A DNA stretch of 18,562 nt. Origin: Ginkgo biloba. Taxonomy: Eukaryota; Plantae; Ginkgophyta. The stretch spans positions 208,882,893 to 208,901,454 of the forward strand of contig JANKJI020000002.1 in assembly GCA_024626585.2 (NCBI GenBank). The letters run 5' to 3'. Within the stretch, counting starts at the first letter, position 1. Each line of letters begins with the position of its first letter. Below the pieces are notes generated by a model. That model worked only from the letters and a program-made list of their open reading frames with translations, was not told where the DNA came from and searched no databases. Shown here piece after piece: positions 5,914 to 17,443 of this stretch. A program made the translations under genes and the position numbers.

Positions 5914-6234
5914 CTGAGTTAGCAAGATCCTCCTTGGGGGTCTCATATCCCATATCCGCTCTCGCTCTCGTTCCCCCTCCCATTTCTTGGTAACTTAGAT
6001 TAAATATTTATAACTATTATTATTTATTATATATCTATTTACTAATAGTATATGCATACTAATAGTATATAAATATTATACTATATAGTATATTATAATA
6101 TATATACTATGACAAGTTTCATAAGTTTTATTATAAATATATTTTTCAAAACCCTAAAATTTTCCGCTCCCCTGTAACTTGGAATTTTGAAAAGTGTCGT
6201 TTCCCGCTCTCGCTCCTGTTTCCTGGTAACTTAG
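5914..6234. mobile_element. Non-autonomous TIR element (MITE, hAT-like termini)
   Basis: Left end CTGAGTTAGCAAG against right end CCTGGTAACTTAG (10/13 complementary). Subterminal CCGCTCTCGCTC motifs at 5956 and 6204; very AT-rich core at 5999-6150. No TSD seen. Confidence 0.6.
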
Positions 6235-6793
6235 GCTATTGGTGTTCTCTCAAGATTTCTGAACTCACCCAAAGAATCTCAGTGGATAGCTACAAAAAGA
6301 GTGCTATGATACATAAAAGGGACATGGAACTTTGGTATACTTCTTGGAAAGAATTCTGATTTTCAGATTGATAGGATTCACTGATTTAGATTGGGTAGGA
6401 TCAATTGATGACTGGAAGTCCACATTCAGTTATGTATTTAGCCTTAGATTACGAGCTATTTCTTGGACCAACAAGAAACAATCCACAGTTGCTCTATCTT
6501 TCATTGAGGTAAAATACAAGTCAATTGTTGAAGATGCATGCAAGGCAGTTTGGATTAGGCGCATCCCTGCTGATATAAAAAATCAAGAAAATCAACCAAC
6601 ACCACTTTGGTGTGATAACCAAAGTACAATAAAGATGACCAAGAATCTAGCGTTTCATGCTTGGACAAAGCATATTGAAATACATCAACACTACATCAAT
6701 GAACAGGTGCAAAATAAGGAGATCGAGTTGATCTACTACAACACAGAAGATCAAGTAGCGGATATATTTACAAAGACCCTAAATCAAGATAAG
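6235..6793 (+). pseudogene. Ty1/Copia RT C-terminus plus RNase H fragment
   Basis: AIGVLSRFLNSPKESQWIATKRVL*YIKGT, then a frameshift into GFTDLDWVGSIDDWKST..ISW..KKQSTVALS..CDNQS..FH..TKHIEI..DQVADIFTK, all canonical Copia motifs. Ends in a gap. Confidence 0.95.
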
Positions 6794-6893
6794 NNNNNNN
6801 NNNNNNNNNNNNNNNNNNNNNNNNNNNNNNNNNNNNNNNNNNNNNNNNNNNNNNNNNNNNNNNNNNNNNNNNNNNNNNNNNNNNNNNNNNNNN

Positions 6894-7044
6894 ATATACT
6901 ATAAACAAGCAATTATATGGCTTAACAACAATATTCATAGGAGGCTTTGGATCATTGATACTTCGAATGCATATGTTCTCTGCCTACTACATTGTTCCCA
7001 CTTTTAACTTGAATCATGGAATTTCTCAAAGATAGTGTAGATCA
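6894..7044 (-). mobile_element. Start of putative 3' LTR of the Tat-type element
   Basis: On the minus strand TG (7044-7043, TGATCTACAC...) immediately follows the polypurine tract. The left limit is lost in a gap and no matching 5' LTR was found. Confidence 0.5.
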
Positions 7045-7055
7045 CCCCCCTTCCT
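7045..7055 (-). promoter_or_regulatory. Polypurine tract (PPT)
   Basis: Minus strand AGGAAGGGGGG directly followed by TG, downstream of and in the same orientation as the PR-RNase H region. Confidence 0.65.
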
Positions 7056-7117
7056 ATAGGCTTAATGGAAATTAATCTGTGATTTTGTGAGTAGGGAAAC
7101 TTTAGTCAAGTTTGAAT

Positions 7118-8118
7118 GTTGACCTTACATGTGGCATCATCTCAAGGAATCAGGGCCATGTGGTGTCTTAAGCACTTGAATTTGGCCCCTTTTTGTCGTT
7201 ATACCCAACAACCTCAAGGAGGACCAAGATTGAGACACGTGGCATCATCTTAGAGCACCTAGGTTGGAAGGACTCAATGATTAGGTATTTTCATTTATTC
7301 TTCCTATAGGTCATGCTGAGGCAAGAGATAGAGACACCTGGCATGATCCTAGATATCTGAGCCTCATAGTGTTTTATAACCCTATTGCTTTTCCATTATC
7401 TTAGGGGGAGTCTATGATCATTTGAGATTCGCACACGTGATATGATCTTGGATCACCTGAATGCATGGCCTTTTGATATCTATCTCTTCAACCTTTATTG
7501 CCTATAAGACTATGGGCTCTCAAGATTGGGATGATTGGAAGCATCTTCTAGATTTGAGCCTAGGTTGTACTTTAAAGTTCCTTCCAAAGTTTTCAAATGT
7601 TGGGAGATGAGGAGTCGCGAGATCCTGCCACGTGGGATGATCTCATGACTCCTAGACCTACTATATTTTGAATTTGCTCTTTCCTTTAGTTTCTCATGAC
7701 ATGAATGCATGATTGAGATTGAGACATATGTCATCATCTCGAGGAGTCTAAATTCATAACTTTTTAGGGATTCCCTTTTTATTTCTTTCCCTATAAACCT
7801 GAGAGCACCTGAGATCAAGACACATGGAATTATCTCAAAGATCCTAACGCTACACTGTTTACCTACCTTGGCTTTTACCTTCTTCTTTTTGTGACTCTTT
7901 GGGTGCCCAATATTGATACATGTGGCACCATCTTAGGGCCTCTAGATCTCGATGCCTTATGGGGTTTATTCAAACCCTTTGAACTACCACGAAGGGAGAA
8001 ACTGTTGGATCCTGCCATGTGGTGTGATCCTTTAACCTGCTGAAGAATTCACCAAAACTCATGAAACACATCTTTTATATATATGAGCAAATTGAAATGT
8101 ACCACATGGTGATTACTA
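7118..8118. repeat. Regularly interspaced palindromic repeat array (10-11 units, period about 97-98 bp)
   Basis: 26-nt cores start at 7118, 7226, 7325, 7424, 7522, 7619, 7715, 7811, 7909, 8006 and weakly 8093. Examples: aagattgagacacgtggcatcatctt, gagatcctgccacgtgggatgatctc, gagattgagacatatgtcatcatctc. Confidence 0.9.
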
Positions 8119-8469
8119 GTGAAACACAAGTTTTCTTTTTGGAATACTAAGGTATTTTAATCAACTTCACCAGGTTTGCTCTGAAAGCCCTGTTCTTCAA
8201 GAGAACATGAAAATAAGCATTGCTATAGGATCTTGAAGCATTGCATGAGAGTGAATTAATCAACAAAGGAGATTTTTATGTATTCAAAGGATAAGGTGAA
8301 TAGTTTCAAAATTTTTAGACATGAAGCTCTGGTGACAGAATGCCATGACAATACATATAGGATCCTTGCAAAGGTGCCTTAGATTTCTTTCAAAAAAGCG
8401 GGGGGGGGGGGGGCACTTTGCAAGCAAAGTAGGGGGTGTTGGAAAATAATAGTTGTCCCTGACTTCACC

Positions 8470-8850
8470 AAGGAGGCTACCATGGCTAGGACATATGAAA
8501 TTTGATTGTCCTCTCTGGGAATATAGTCTATTAAGAAATCTTAGAAATTATCTAGGAGGTGCCTAAATCTACTCCAATAATTTTTCTATCTTGAATTCTT
8601 CATTGAACATTAGTCTTTAACTTGGTTAATCACTAACCCTGAATCTCCCTTCACCTGGACGAACTCTATTTTCATTTTGATAGCCTTCAATAATCCAAGT
8701 ATTAGAGCTTCATACTTGGAAATGTTATTTTTGCATTTAAAATTTAGTCTATATGTGAACATATAGACTATTATGTTGGGAGCATGGAGAGTTATCCCAA
8801 GCACCAACCCCAAATTTTGAATTTGCGCCATCAAAGTATATAGTCTAGAC
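8470..8850 (-). pseudogene. Archaeal-type RNase H (aRH) of a Tat-lineage Ty3/Gypsy element
   Basis: *TIYFDGANSKFGVGA, then a frameshift into GITLHAP..FTYRLNFKCKNNISKYEALILGL..VKGDSGLVINQV..IPREDNQ..LA..AS. FDG, YEAL and GDS motifs are present; the last catalytic D is replaced. Confidence 0.9.
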
Positions 8851-9415
8851 TTGATCTTTCATCTTGATCAACTTCGTACCTCTCTTCTTCACTGGTTGGC
8901 AACCCATTGTAATATTCTGCAAACACTGTGTAGGTACCCATGTCTCCAGGAACATATTGAGTATTTGCCTCTTTGCCTTCCCTATCATCAACAAAGTCTT
9001 TATATTTTCTTTCTCTTGAAAGAGTGATGACGTCCTTGTTATTAAGAAAGGTGATAATGGATATCATTGTATTAATGGATGTCCCTACCTCAGCTATCCA
9101 TTCACAACCCAGAAGCATCCCATATACCAAAGACATATCGAACACTACGATTGAAATTAACACCGCTATTTTGGAAAATGCAACCATATTCACCACTAAA
9201 TGTTTGATTTCACCAACAACATCTATAATTTTTTAGTCCATCGCCCTTACGATTTGATTAGTTTTAATGCACTGGAGCCCCAAGGTCTTCATGATAGCAT
9301 AAGGCATGATATTATGCGCCACTCCCGTGTCAACAATGCAATTTTGGAGTATGAAATTATCCATCTTTAGGGATATATAAAAGGGGGGACTCTGGACCCT
9401 TAACCCAAGAACCAC
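8851..9415 (-). pseudogene. Retrotransposon aspartic protease plus acidic linker (Tat-type)
   Basis: PPFYISL..ILQNCIVDTGVAHNIMP..LGL..AMD*K.I.VVGEIK..YGMLLGCEW. ORFs 9233..9415 and 8831..9196 are in one frame, separated by a single stop. Confidence 0.9.
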
Positions 9416-9963
9416 GACTTTAGTAATTTCTTATTCCACCATGGCATTGAGATTAATTTTCATTCGTTCGTGGGGATTCTATCATCTGCTCTTTTTGGTG
9501 TGGTAGTTTCATTACTTGATAAAGGCTCATTCCCATGGGATATCTCCACAAATCTTTCAAGATATCATATTTTGAAAAAGATGAAGCTTTGTCAAGGGGG
9601 AGTTAGTACTTGGAGTGAAAGGTGGCTTTAGAGTCAAAGTAATCCTATGAGAACCATTAGAATTTTGAAGAAATAAGTAGTCATTACAAGTTGTTGGGTC
9701 TAAGACAACAATTATTCTTTTTGTCTTAAGGCCCTCCTTGTAGTCCAAGGGTTGAAGTTCCTAGCGGGTTTTGGGGAAGCACCCCAGCAGGGTCCAAGTG
9801 GCAAAGCCTCTTCGAGATGCATTGTGGTGCCATCCTTACTGTCTGGGAAACCCTATGATCTCTTTGTGAATCAAAAGTAAGAAATCCCATTCACTTCCTT
9901 TAGGAAAACAAGTAAGTATGGGAGTCCATAGGCTAAAAATGAAAATATAGGTTGTCCTCAAAA

Positions 9964-10990
9964 TGTAAACTTAATCAATGTCGACTCAATCAAAAGCTCA
10001 TATTTGTATGATTTGTTCGGAGTTATTCAACATGCTCAGACATCAAGCTTGAGTAATTAAAGAGCACCATATAATGAGATTCCAAACTCCAACAATTGAA
10101 TGATGGAAGCTTACAATATGATATGGATAAAATTGAGTGAAACTTTGGCAAATGTTGAAGTTTTGTTAGGCAAAAAATCAAAGTGCAAAAGGGCCTAATA
10201 CTAGCAAAGAGAGCCAACAGTGTAATCGAGTGAAAGTGCAAATTCTAGAATAAGTTGGCAATTCATTGCATGGGATCTACTGAGATTTATTGATGGAGAT
10301 CAACGATGGGATTTTGTCAGAGCTTGGCACTAAGTATAAAAGTGCAAAAGGGCCTACTAGTGTAATTGAGAGAATATGCAAAATACAAAAAGGTCTAATA
10401 GGAATGCAAAATGACCTGACATAGTACAAGAGTGCCTCGAGACCTACAATGGTCCAACCCAACTTCCACATGAGCAAATTACCACATGGAAGATGTGAAC
10501 TCAACTAGCTACAAGTCAAGAAGTTAGAATTGAACAATTATATAACAGTATCTTGCTTAGGTCATGTAGGCAACCAACTAGAACAGTAGTTGTAGTGAAG
10601 CATTATAAAAGCTCACTTGAAATTAGAAGCTGAGGTTCCATAGTTGGTTTCTTATAATCAAAGGAGGCGGAGAGTTCACTTCCTTCTATTAGAGGAGTTC
10701 GAATGACTAGAAATTGGACACAAAGGGTTCTCGCATTTTTTATCTTCTCTTTCTAAGAATCTTGCAGATATTGTAAGTTGATTTTTGTGTGGAGGCAACA
10801 ATTTTGTGCACTCTGATTAGCAACCCTCTTGTGGGATATAAAGCTCTATAATTCTCTGGATACAAATTCAACATTAAAGCTTGATGGAAAAGCTCTGTAG
10901 AGCATTCTCTTTTTTGTTAACAAAATCAATCTTTTCCTTATGACTATAGGCGATGAATGTGAATTATTGTAATTTTTATCTGTAGTACAC
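9964..10990. mobile_element. LTR-like non-coding segment with internal subrepeats
   Basis: Exact 18-mer AAAGTGCAAAAGGGCCTA at 10180 and 10339 with degenerate copies near 10381 and 10402; TATAAAA at about 10604. Boundaries are uncertain. Confidence 0.35.
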
Positions 10991-12113: not shown

Positions 12114-14579
12114 NCTTTATACCATAGTAAGCCCCCTTTCCACTTATACATGCCCACAATACTTGTTGTCCCCTACTGTACTTTAGAAATCAGATTGACT
12201 ATATCATTGTTTTTAGTGTACTCAACTTGGATTTCAACTGTCCATTGGGGTTCTATGGTCGTCATAACCTCTAAGCCAACATCATCATACCTCCTTGAAA
12301 GCGCACCCACTACAATATTCTTATTTCCTTTTTTATAGTTGATTTCAAAGTGAAAAGATTGTAACCTCAAAACCCATCTCTGCTAGATCGTGCTCAAGGG
12401 TTTTTGGGATAAGGAGTACTTGAGACTATTATGATTAGTCCTTACCTTAAAGGAACTACCCAACAAATTGCATTGCCACTTCTCCACCGCATGAATTATT
12501 ACCAATATCTCTTTATCATTTGCAGATAGTGAAAGTTCTTATTTCTTGAACTTCCCACTCTCAAAAGCTATGGGCCTCCTTTCCTACATGAGAACTGCTC
12601 CGATTCCCACACTCGAAGCATCACACTCAGCCAAGATTGATAAGGTAGTCATAATCCCCTTGAGCTGATCAAAACATTTTTTAGCTTCCTTGTTCCAAGA
12701 AAAGGCCCCTTTCTTGGTCAAACTGCTCAAGGCGGCTACCTTGGATGAATAATATTTTACAAATCTTCAATAATACTTTGTCAACCTTAAAATCTCCCAC
12801 AACTTTAAGATGTTAGTTGGCCTAGGCCAACTCAAGATTGCCTCAATCTTTCCTCAAATCCACTATAACTCCCTTTGGGGAAATAATGTGACCAAGATAT
12901 TCTAATTCTANNNNNNNNNNNNTTGGATTTTTTAGCATACAATTGATTATCTCTTAACACTTGTTGAACCATCCTTAGATGATCCATGTGTAGCTGCAAG
13001 GTAGAACTATAAACCAAGATATCATGAAAAAAAAACATTTAAATTTTTTGAAGAAAAGGTCCAAATACCTTGTTCATCACAACCTGAAAAGTTGTTGGGG
13101 AGTTGGTGAGCCCAAAGGACATCACCAAGAACTCATAGTGGCCTAAACAAATTCTAAAGCAATCTTTGGAGTGTCCTCTTTTCTAACCCGTATCTGATGA
13201 TACCCCAATCTCAGGGCAATCTTTGGAAAAATGGCCACTCTATGTAGTTCATCCATAACATAGTCAATCCAAGAACTTGGAAATCCATTCTTTATAGTGG
13301 CCTTGTTGAGGCCCCCGTAATCAATGCTCATCCTCTATGTTCCATCTTTCTTTCTTGATAGAACTACCAATGCGGCAAATGGACTCCTGCTGGGAACTGT
13401 ATGTCCTAAATACCCCATTCCTTCACTATCCTCTCAATTTCAAACTTGTAAAAATGAGCTAGTTGATATGGAGGAATCATAATTGGAGTTGTTCCTAGCT
13501 CTAATTCGATGATATTCTCCATTCCACAATGAATAGGAAGACCCTTGGGCAAATCAACAAACACATTATTGAAGGATTCCACTACCTCGTTCAAATTGCT
13601 GAAAGGTGACATTACCTCTTCTTCTGCTAGAGGATGTATTAAATAAATTTGAGCTAAAATCCCTGGTTCTCCTGTGCTCGAATTCTTTTTTCATTTGCCA
13701 AGTTGTAATTAATTACGGTGTAAGACTATTAACTCCTTGAATTTTCACTTCTCTGTCAACCTCTTTAATTCCAATGGACAACTCTTTCAAATGAAGTTTG
13801 ATTTCCCGTAAAGTTTGCAACCATTATGCGTCTAGTATCTGATCCTATGCACTGACAGCCACAACATAGAAATTAGAAACATGTGGTCACCTATTCTTAA
13901 TTGTACTCACCTGCAAATTCCCTCGCATTCCATAGTTGCCTCATCTGCAACCCATACCTTAAAACCAACCAATCTATCTAGAGGAAGTCGTAGTTGCTTA
14001 GCCACTGAAGACTTAATAAAATTATGCGTGCTGCCCATATCTATGAGATCCATCAACTTCATTTTCTTCACATGGGCAATAACCTACATTGTTTTTGGCT
14101 GAAGTACACCTACCATGGCCAAAATGTATATGAGTGGGGTGTCAACTTCCATGCTGAATTTAGTATTATCTTTATTATTTAGCTCCTCATTATTCTTGAT
14201 TTCTTCGTTGACCACCTCCTCCTCATAGATGCACATTTGTGGCCCGGTTGCTACCGTTCCTTGTACTGAAAACATAGCCCTTCTGCCTAAGTTCATCAAC
14301 TTGGCTAGGCTCCAATGATNNNNNNNNNNNNNNNNNNNNNNNNNNNNNNNNNNNNNNCCGACTACTACTAACTTTGTTGTGACTGGAAAACTGTTGTACC
14401 TGTTGTTCTCTGTGGCTTAAAACTTGCTATGATCCTTTCCTTGGACCACTATAGCATGCTCTCTTCATAACTCAACACTTTGTTTATGGCTTCTTCTCAA
14501 CTTCTAGGTCCATGTCCTTTATGTCCCTTCAGGGGCCCTTTCAACTAGTCAATAAACATCAAAATAGGTTGCGGTCTAC
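12114..14579 (-). mobile_element. Decayed Ty3/Gypsy chromovirus-type gag-pol (gag end, PR, RT, RNase H, start of integrase region)
   Basis: Gag: LMFID*LKGPL.. and DELRQKGLCF..PGHKC. PR: LIDMGSTHNFI. RT: [54 protein letters not shown]: ECDAS..GIGAVL..PIAFES..YKKGNKNIVVGALSR. Many stops and frameshifts. Confidence 0.95.
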
Positions 14580-16153: not shown

Positions 16154-16596
16154 NNNNNNNNNNNNNNNNNNNNNNNNNNNNNNNNNNNNNNNNNNNNNNN
16201 NNNNNNNNNNNNNNNNNNNNNNNNNNNNNNNNNNNNNNNNNNNNNNNNNNNNNCCTTATCCATGCTTTGAAAGAGGTACCAAGAGCCACACCACATAATC
16301 CAAAATTTGCATATTCTTGAACTACTTCACATTTTGTAGTTGCTTCCACTCCCTTCTAGATCGTTTATGCTTGGGTTCTTGATCTTCAAACTACTCAGAT
16401 GGCACCCTTTTTTCTTTATGAAAATTATCCATCTCTTCCTCTTCTTGTTCTAGTGTAGGTTCCNNNNNNNNNNNNNNNNNNNNNNNNNNNNNNNNNNNNN
16501 NNNNNNNNNNNNNNNNNTCTTAAGCTTTCTAACTTCAACCTCAATGGCTTCCAACTTCTTCAAGATCTCAGATTCAATCCTGAAATCCTCCCTTGG

Positions 16597-16608
16597 GCTC
16601 TGATACCA
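16597..16608 (-). promoter_or_regulatory. Primer binding site (tRNA-iMet), duplicated copy
   Basis: Minus strand TGGTATCAGAGC, a perfect plant iMet PBS. Confidence 0.85.
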
Positions 16609-16738
16609 TTAACCACTTCCTTCTTCTGTCATAAGTAAGGACTGGATTCTCTCGATTTCTCGTAAGCTTTCTAACTTTTACCTCAATGGCTTCCAACTTC
16701 TTCAAGATCTCAGATTCAATCCTGGAATCCTCCCTTGG

Positions 16739-16750
16739 GCTTTGATACCA
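16739..16750 (-). promoter_or_regulatory. Primer binding site (tRNA-iMet), LTR-adjacent copy
   Basis: Minus strand TGGTATCAAAGC (one mismatch), preceded by ..CTATTATA A, which may be a CA>TA-mutated LTR end. Confidence 0.8.
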
Positions 16751-16751
16751 T

Positions 16752-17443
16752 TATAATAGTCTTCTCTATTGAGCCTACATGCCAACACATTTGAGTACAA
16801 CAACATAGATAATCATTATAATACCAGTGCATAATAAATATTTATTTATATTAATTAATGACTAATGCACATACATGACATACCTAAAAGGTAGACTATT
16901 AGGGGCAAAGGTAGACTAGGCAATTGGCTTAACATCCACTGTTGGCTACCAAGGACCACCTTAAAGGACCTATTTAGTTGGTAGCTAAATCTCCAGTGGT
17001 AACACAGTACATGCCATTAGCGCCTAGCGACTATTACTAATACGCTAGATGACACTCCTTAACCCAACCAAATAAGGGTGCCATGCGTAGGTCTCTTTGC
17101 AACCTCTCTTTAGCACTATGGCGGTCTTCCAAATGAGACGTCCACCCTAACTAATAGAATACATACATGATAATATTATTGGTTATAACATAAGAGTGAG
17201 CATAAACAAAAAATGGACTTAAAACAACCCACAAGTCAGTCTAGATGTATGACCCATTATCAGTGCTAGCACACCTCATCGCACTGGAGCATCATCGAAG
17301 GTTCTCAAGGTTCTAACCCTACCCTCATTGTTAGTTTGCCCAAATATATCATAAATTCTCACTAGGGCTATGGCTTGTATGGTCCCAAGTTGGAGAAAGA
17401 TGCATGAATGCCTTAGTGTATCCACTACTATACCCAATAGATC
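16752..17443 (-). mobile_element. Probable 5' LTR of a minus-strand LTR retrotransposon
   Basis: Non-coding sequence directly upstream of the PBS. The far boundary is unknown and is set here at the next gap. Confidence 0.55.

Follow-up and report, generated by a model that had tools for sequence, protein, structure and literature searches.

A phased tandem array with a preserved G-box-centred core upstream of the putative 3' LTR of a probable Tat-clade retroelement copy in Ginkgo biloba

Introduction

In a window of 18,562 nucleotides from Ginkgo biloba (the whole stretch of DNA that was analysed; assembly GCA_024626585.2, contig JANKJI020000002.1), short and partly palindromic blocks recur at a nearly constant distance and are separated by stretches that bear little likeness to one another. 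The question raised by this locus is what kind of element carries such an array and what has kept the blocks. Tat-lineage elements typically carry tandem arrays between pol and the 3' LTR (PMC6317226; PMC7004042; PMC11963269), and tandem repeats in the 3' UTR of Ogre, Retand and Tat were described by Macas et al. (2009), as cited in PMC7004042. Between families these arrays are hypervariable (PMC7004042; PMC11963269), and satellite DNA of plants is documented to have arisen from them. An origin by aberrant strand transfer in the course of replication has been proposed (PMC7004042); a survey from 2025 still gives both their origin and their function as unknown (PMC11963269). As set out below, the feature at this locus is very probably the pol-to-3'-LTR tandem array of a Tat-clade Ty3/gypsy element, present here as an old copy.

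Results

Host retroelement and surrounding window

The window, a stretch of draft scaffold interrupted by 13 runs of N, is a mosaic of decayed plant copia and gypsy fragments. The element that carries the array reads on the minus strand, and the original prediction is corrected on this point. Along that strand the order is retropepsin-like protease, archaeal-type RNase H (aRH), a linker of ∼240 bp, the array, a polypurine tract (PPT) and TG (Table 1). The Pfam match of the aRH to RVT_3 (8613–8858, minus strand) has an E value of 4.7e-05 and a score of 23.7 bits against a cut-off of 21.6. The array starts ∼240 bp past the last pol homology (∼8433) and ends ∼60 bp before AGGAAGGGGGG and TG. An extension of the pol homology to ∼8287, read by eye, was rejected because BLASTP gave it no support; the confirmed homology stops at ∼8433. 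Past the array, the element strand continues as CCTATAGGAAGGGGGG and then TG, which we read as the PPT and a putative LTR start. The LTR is called putative because an N gap lies at 6794–6893 and because neither an LTR pair nor a second copy was found within the window.

No RT, no integrase and no RNase H other than aRH was found in the element copy at this locus. The copy is truncated 5' of ∼9600–9680, where the contig depth drops, and it appears to be internally deleted as well, or non-autonomous. The aRH domain is specific to the Tat clade; it lies between PROT and RT in TatI and TatII (club-mosses, gymnosperms) and between RH and INT in Ogre and Retand (Neumann et al., 2019; PMC6317226). 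Since the aRH adjoins the protease here and RT and integrase are absent, the element is Tat-like but no typical Ogre. The proposed assignment to the 3' region of a Tat/Ogre retroelement accordingly holds for the clade, through the aRH/RVT_3 domain beside the retropepsin, and fails for a typical Ogre.

Two further retroelement fragments were recognized in the window: the tail of a copia-type RNase H on the plus strand (6317–6793) and a gypsy PR–RT–RNase H fragment on the minus strand (12176–14416). In two RNA runs, of which 2% and 6% were read, reads fell only on the copia fragment, and none were seen on the array, the protease or the aRH. An origin of the array as part of the copia fragment was considered and rejected because the two differ in depth profile. 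It is also contradicted by the copia fragment being the sole part with RNA reads and by the polypurine tracts of the array and the PPT lying on the minus strand.

Table 1. Features of the array and of the element that carries it. Positions are those of the window; cores are numbered u1 to u10 by increasing position.
Feature	Positions	Strand	Remarks
Putative PPT AGGAAGGGGGG, then TG (putative 3' LTR start)	7045–7055	−	Embedded in CCTATAGGAAG
Tandem array	7116–8190	−	10 clear units and a weak 11th; period 96–99 bp, first unit 108 bp
Core u1	7116–7154	−	Centre CATGTG; second partial core GCCATGTGGTGT at 7155–7166
Core u2	7224–7262	−	Best preserved; element strand AAGATGATGCCACGTGTCTCAATCTT
Core u3	7323–7361	−	Centre CACCTG
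Core u4	7422–7460	−	Centre CACGTG
Core u5	7520–7558	−	Most decayed; other letters at 7533 and 7535 in most paralogues
Core u6	7617–7655	−	Symmetric type; 22-nt arms 82% complementary, unit-specific outer stem AGGAGTC/GACTCCT
Core u7	7713–7751	−	Centre CATATG
Core u8	7809–7847	−	Centre CACATG
Core u9	7907–7945	−	Centre CATGTG
Core u10	8004–8042	−	Symmetric type like u6; centre CATGTG
Linker, from the end of recognizable pol homology to the array	8191–8432	−	C14 run at ∼8400–8413; summed depth resembles that of the array
Archaeal-type RNase H (aRH, Pfam RVT_3), frameshifted	8382–8858	−	Protein homology to relatives ends at ∼8433, next to the C14 run
Retropepsin-like protease, DTGA motif	8834–9430	−	One in-frame stop at 9233–9235; weak Asp_protease_2 and gag-asp_proteas matches

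Layout of the array

Ten clear cores were located, with centre-to-centre steps of 108, 99, 99, 98, 97, 96, 96, 98 and 97 bp, and a weak 11th unit lies near 8091; the number and the spacings originally given were reproduced exactly. The monomers are arranged head to tail, ten units with a period of 96–99 bp, where three or more tandem copies suffice for a tandem array, and the spread in unit length is only ±1.2 bp. A repeat search returned a 39-nt block in eight in-register copies (7224–7907; steps of 99, 99, 98, 97, 96, 96 and 98 bp), with weaker copies at 7116/7120 and 8004/8008. When a 20-nt core pattern was searched for with up to three mismatches, four matches were obtained in the window against 0.00 expected from 200 shuffles. 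Tandem Repeats Finder, run at a minimum score of 30, did not report the array, because its monomers are too diverged and are alike only in part. Classification as satellite DNA was rejected: the array extends over ∼1.1 kb, divergence between monomers has nearly reached saturation outside the core, and no higher-order repeat was found among its units. A coding repeat was likewise rejected because a period of 96–99 bp is no steady multiple of three. The 140-aa stop-free stretch that crosses the array on the minus strand gave no Pfam match.

Sequence, symmetry and decay of the cores

Each monomer (∼97 bp) is composed of a conserved block of ∼45 nt and a degenerate stretch of ∼55 nt. The cores share 60% identity across 39 nt, a figure that rises to 68% when only the inner 26 nt are compared. 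The conserved block consists of the 5-bp inverted arms GAGAT/ATCTC, 16 nt apart, placed around CACGTG. Across the ten cores, consistent symmetry is restricted to these arms (paired in seven to nine of ten units) and to the central hexamer (central C-G); the 5 + 5 nt between arms and centre are kept in sequence, yet are non-complementary in eight of the ten units. The palindrome described in the original prediction is thus confirmed for the arms and the central hexamer only, the intervening nucleotides being unpaired in most units. Units u6 and u10 represent a second, more symmetric type of core.

The central CACGTG is intact in u2, u4 and u6. Among the other centres, CATGTG is found in three units and CACATG and CATATG in one each, so that five of the seven variants are products of CpG transitions, while u3 (CACCTG) and u5 must have changed in other ways. 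CpG is depleted across the array as a whole (11 seen, 41 expected). Both observations make plausible the earlier suggestion that many core differences are CpG transitions. On the element strand u2 reads GCCACGTGTC and, with its ACGTG(G/T)C-type flanks, has the sequence of a G-box/ABRE; the flanks of CACGTG give both ABRE forms, ACGTGGC and ACGTGTC.

Spacers and in-phase polypurine tracts

Compared in register, the spacers are 32–34% identical, against 27.6% in shuffles (z of 4–6); with gaps allowed, identity is 54% against 51.5 ± 5.1%. The spacers are indeed barely alignable, as had been claimed, but they are not free, since an in-phase polypurine tract and the weak in-register similarity are kept. 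On the element strand of the array, nine polypurine runs of at least 8 nt were counted (3.7 ± 1.7 in shuffles); they occur in most spacers, and their distance from the cores is roughly constant. The spacer of u2 holds CCTATAGGAAGAA, a near-copy of the terminal CCTATAGGAAGGGGGG, and CCTATAGGAAG, the context of the terminal PPT, recurs in the same spacer at 7298–7305.

Paralogues in the same plant

Contigs from two independent DNA runs of the same plant were placed on positions 6200–10200 at a likeness of at least 85%. This gave 1553 and 2703 contigs, respectively, most of them 85–95% alike. The array is covered by contigs at 85–99% likeness, and the differences are dominated by transitions. Summed word depth in the array bins is 740–2840, compared with ∼75 for the contigs of this locus, which corresponds to ∼10–40 paralogues. 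The array is therefore a family trait that many dispersed element copies have in common. The original prediction had allowed that the array might be private to this locus or its spacers as alike as its cores; the DNA contigs decide this in its favour, with ∼10–40 copy equivalents and with cores far better kept than spacers. Summed depth reaches ∼6900 in the protease and aRH bins, which implies that the coding part is common to more subfamilies than the array. Such wider sharing of the coding part is the expectation for a hypervariable 3' region.

Paralogous contigs run without gaps through spacer, core and spacer at ∼85% identity. Examples are three contigs that cover 7262–7499 (36 differences in 238 positions), 7866–8019 (22 in 154) and 7918–8161 (36 in 244). 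Because the paralogues share the spacers colinearly and without gaps, the spacers are inherited and position-specific. The divergence between spacers must also predate the spread of the family, and unit lengths are conserved between copies. Some contig joints skip or repeat ∼1–2 units, often at core edges (7221 joined to 7416 skips 194; 7949 joined to 8053 skips 103), so that there has been some gain and loss of units among copies of the array.

Relatives in other sequence sources

An exhaustive protein search of representatives returned 15 short fragment relatives only, the search for proteins homologous to the 133-aa protease piece gave no match, and the u2 core gave no match in metagenome contigs. 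The order from protease to aRH is colinear in at least five relatives among the contigs L001–L008, at 65–70% nucleotide identity. The G-box array is absent from L001–L008: L001 has no array within 4 kb downstream, and L007 has neither an array nor any CAYRTG within 1.4 kb. As relatives at this level of identity are without the array, any function of the array would be specific to a lineage. In L005 and L007 the reading frame runs on past the point that matches ∼8433, and in L002 a gag-like stretch was read by eye upstream. An RT motif read by eye in L007 found no support in Pfam, so that protease, aRH and RT are taken only tentatively as the full ancestral order.

Discussion

Alternative explanations

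One alternative is that the cores make up a ladder of hairpins in RNA or minus-strand cDNA. Its role would be to recruit Gag or an export factor, to support packaging or dimerisation of the RNA, or to make reverse transcriptase pause, and it would have counterparts in the transport and packaging elements of retroviral 3' regions. Such a hairpin would be imperfect and built from an outer stem that covaries, a helix of GAGAU with AUCUC, an internal loop of conserved sequence and, at its apex, the self-complementary CACGUG. We regard this as unlikely, although several observations point towards it. In units u6 and u2 the predicted fold is more stable than in shuffles (z of −3.58 and −2.39), and the outer 7-bp helix beats shuffles overall at 1 to 5 of 500. 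Within this helix the unit-specific complementarity is 58.6% paired, against 46.9 ± 4.0% in shuffles (1/500) and 34–44% when slid, and further pair types number 14 against 9.4 (2/500). Retention of the array in a copy without RT and integrase would, moreover, be expected of a replication signal that acts in cis. Template switching in inverted repeats can, however, yield unit-specific complementarity without selection, and the remaining tests do not favour a fold. The other eight of the ten units fold no better than shuffles, the RNAalifold consensus is only a 5-bp helix closing a 16-nt loop (−0.03 kcal/mol), and the covariation score of the whole palindrome is equalled by a slide of one column (0.178 versus 0.189). 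There is no bias towards G·U over A·C on the sense strand (16 versus 28). Rfam, searched at E values up to 1, gave only a chance match to mir-240 (21.6 bits, gathering score 67.5), and no RNA reads were seen on the array in the 2% and 6% of the runs that were read. The same fold, Rfam and read results leave the processed multi-hairpin RNA of the original prediction weak. What is kept in the cores is mainly a sequence and not a fold.

A functionless, decayed minisatellite is about as improbable as the hairpins. Its cores would only appear conserved, through a mutational or recombinational bias, the source of which would be strand transfer or conversion between cores during reverse transcription or the symmetrisation of palindromes by template switching. 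The published view of such arrays as hypervariable and of unknown origin and function (PMC7004042; PMC11963269) agrees with it, as do the relatives without an array and the lack of expression seen in 2% and 6% of the RNA runs. The contig joints at core edges, at which ∼1–2 units are skipped or repeated, show that cores act as recombination points. Transfers from core to core, however, duplicate or delete whole units and would homogenize the spacers, which are near saturation; unit length is held to ±1.2 bp with paralogues aligning gaplessly, and the hexamer preserved at the centre matches a canonical plant cis-element exactly. A more improbable reading turns to the polypurine tracts, which would form a ladder of auxiliary PPTs, ∼10 extra sites for initiation of plus-strand DNA with the palindrome as an adjacent signal. 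The excess of polypurine runs and their roughly constant distance from the cores fit this, as does one run whose surroundings nearly repeat those of the terminal PPT (CCTATAGGAAG). The tracts are nonetheless short and variable, their purine richness may be the residue of a reiterated PPT segment, and it is the core and not the tract that is best kept, which auxiliary PPTs fail to explain. Lastly, the array is almost certainly not a CRISPR-like adaptive store of acquired sequences. Its layout of regular, partly palindromic repeats and dissimilar spacers of fixed length is the one feature that fits, whereas the carrier is a plant transposon in a eukaryotic scaffold without cas genes, the repeats are only 60–68% alike instead of near-identical, and the spacers keep common in-phase features and are shared position by position among paralogues, which shows inheritance with the element instead of acquisition. 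For this reason nothing is gained from the CRISPR analogy, and every defining feature of such arrays that could be tested fails.

Proposed origin and function of the array

For the Tat-type array, the sequence of this copy and the contig tables make purifying selection on core and spacing within the element lineage moderately likely. Constraint is favoured over bias because recombination between cores would homogenize the spacers, and because the period is held to ±1.2 bp although the spacers are near saturation. With less confidence, and short of an even chance, the core may be read as a reiterated protein-binding site that is recognized on duplex DNA as a G-box/ABRE, so that the protein-binding ladder of the original prediction stays viable. 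This reading is favoured by the preservation of sequence over fold and by the centre, whose CACGTG matches the G-box of plants exactly and is flanked on either strand by ABRE-type sequence. It is also favoured by the 5-bp inverted arms, whose separation of two helical turns would suit a symmetric binder that acts as a multimer. CACGTG is the G-box, which is bound by bZIP GBFs and overlaps the bHLH site CANNTG, and ACGTGTC is the ABRE (PMC3738159). G-box-type motifs have been amplified by plant transposons (PMC5950925).

The array was probably born by reiteration of a PPT-proximal segment during replication of the element. The in-phase PPT-like tracts suggest such an origin, which fits the published proposal of aberrant strand transfer. 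A monomer would then comprise a core and a PPT-like tract, with the functional PPT as the last of the series. The monomers would have diverged within the element lineage while core and spacing held, and after insertion CpG deamination would have eroded the cores. In function, the core would be a cis-acting site present ∼10 times. Host bZIP or bHLH dimers would bind the resulting G-box/ABRE ladder in a methylation-sensitive manner, and the ladder, directly upstream of the putative 3' LTR, would act as an enhancer for the element. As the site contains CpG, it would be silenced once the host methylated it and then lost to deamination, in agreement with the observed decay. The complete statement, array identity and mechanism taken together, is put forward tentatively.

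Two observations bear on the binding reading itself. Cis-elements of plant retrotransposons usually lie in the U3 promoter, and the position of the array outside U3 speaks against a G-box function. The footprint of a bZIP or bHLH dimer leaves the conserved GAGAT/ATCTC arms, 8–12 bp from the centre, without explanation, and it also fails to explain the unit-specific complementarity of the outer flanks (58.6% against 46.9%).

The array stands out, and its differential decay is visible, because it is old enough for its neutral parts to have decayed. With the 45-nt block and the period kept, this decay marks the nucleotides that may matter, and they coincide with a canonical host cis-element. The in-phase PPT-like tracts provide sequence-level support for an origin of the array by PPT-proximal reiteration. 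A more far-reaching possibility, which we consider rather doubtful, is that the ∼10 phased units, each with a methylation-sensitive G-box/ABRE palindrome and a PPT-like tract, are a ladder of cis-modules belonging to a Tat-like family, in which selection maintains the spacing as well as the core. Were this true, the ladder might confer transcription responsive to ABA, stress or light, or an advantage in replication or packaging, on the element and its RT-less derivatives, and it would be the first function assigned to the 3' tandem arrays of Tat elements.

Comparison with known systems

Like a prokaryotic CRISPR, the array alternates a partly palindromic repeat regularly with dissimilar spacers of fixed length. 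It differs in belonging to a eukaryotic transposon with diverged repeats and inherited spacers, in having neither cas genes nor a leader, and in its period of 97 bp, compared with ∼60–70 bp. The constitutive transport element of MPMV and the direct repeats of RSV are cis-acting RNA elements of retroviral 3' regions. The array resembles them in its place just upstream of the putative PPT and 3' LTR, in being repeated and in combining a partly symmetric hairpin with conserved unpaired stretches; in contrast to them, it shows no stable consensus fold, no sequence relation and no transcription in the RNA reads examined.

Repeated cis-elements occur in the U3 of Tnt1, and ONSEN carries heat-shock elements. 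As in transcription-factor motifs amplified by transposons, a host cis-element (CACGTG with ABRE-type flanks) is present here in many copies on a mobile carrier. MITEs carry G-box-related ABF, ABI5 and PIF motifs (PMC5950925). Whereas such carriers have one site per element or a short repeat in U3, the ∼10 predicted sites of the Ginkgo element form a single phased array inside the element, upstream of the putative 3' LTR and outside the promoter.

The closest likeness is to the arrays of the Tat lineage, and the array is a member of this known kind and not a new class of system. It shares with them the site between the last pol domain and the putative PPT and 3' LTR, an aRH-bearing host, family-specific monomers (tens to ∼200 bp) and a unit number that varies among copies. 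Unlike Ogre and Retand, the host element has the protease directly followed by the aRH, which is the TatI/TatII order (PMC6317226), and has no RT and no integrase. Less usual in the Ginkgo array are the preserved core, the tight period and the in-phase polypurine tract in most spacers: where Tat-lineage arrays are usually similar along the whole monomer, similarity here is concentrated in a conserved block of ∼45 nt, outside which the sequence approaches saturation; the period varies by no more than ±1.2 bp, and the core is a partial palindrome centred on a G-box.

Composition of the array units

Most spacers between the G-box-centred cores carry an in-phase polypurine tract on the element strand, with nine runs observed against 3.7 expected. 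One of these tracts is embedded in a near-copy of the context of the terminal polypurine tract (PPT), CCTATAGGAAG. On this sequence evidence, the near-copy and the in-phase spacing together, the repeated unit of the array therefore seems to include the PPT.

The 12-mer GCCATGTGGTGT occurs identically at 7155–7166, as an extra partial core within the first unit, which is long at 108 bp, and at 8014–8025, as the core of the tenth unit, u10. The two cores of the symmetric type, u6 and u10, are four units apart. On the element strand, a stretch of 140 codons without a stop spans four units. This stretch gave no Pfam match and the period of the array is not a steady multiple of three, so low complexity and chance are probably its cause.

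Features of the window
Feature	Position	Strand	Remarks
Copia-type RNase H tail	6317–6793 (within 6200–6869)	+	
Polypurine tracts, in phase	7045–7055, 7186–7194, 7298–7305, 7578–7585, 7677–7687, 7771–7792, 7878–7890	−	
Stop-free stretch	7513–7932	−	
Retropepsin-like domain, then directly archaeal-type RNase H	8382–9430	−	Colinear in L001–L008
Decayed Ty3/gypsy protease–RT–RNase H fragment	12176–14416	−	RT_RNaseH and RVP_2 matches
Direct repeat, 94 nt	16518–16611, 16660–16753		

Neighbouring sequences

Within 6200–10200, RNA reads were found only on the copia-type RNase H tail, in both RNA runs. These reads probably derive from paralogues, because every one has less than 95% likeness to the tail, over which contig depth is very high (up to ~15,600). 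The Ty3/gypsy fragment, downstream of which no integrase was recognisable, is distinct from the array-bearing element. The two copies of the 94-nt direct repeat are 95% identical and 142 bp apart; the first begins exactly where the N run 16464–16517 ends. Either an artefact of assembly or a duplication at this site may account for the repeat.

Domain order of the array-bearing element

RT, RH and integrase are absent from the window copy of this element, and its confirmed homology to the relatives ends at ~8433, beside a C14 run. The colinearity of protease and archaeal-type RNase H was found in the window and in all relatives fetched by protein search (L001–L008), at 65–70% nucleotide identity. 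A retropepsin-like domain directly before the archaeal-type RNase H is the order of TatI/TatII elements of club-mosses and gymnosperms, not that of Ogre/Retand (PMC6317226).
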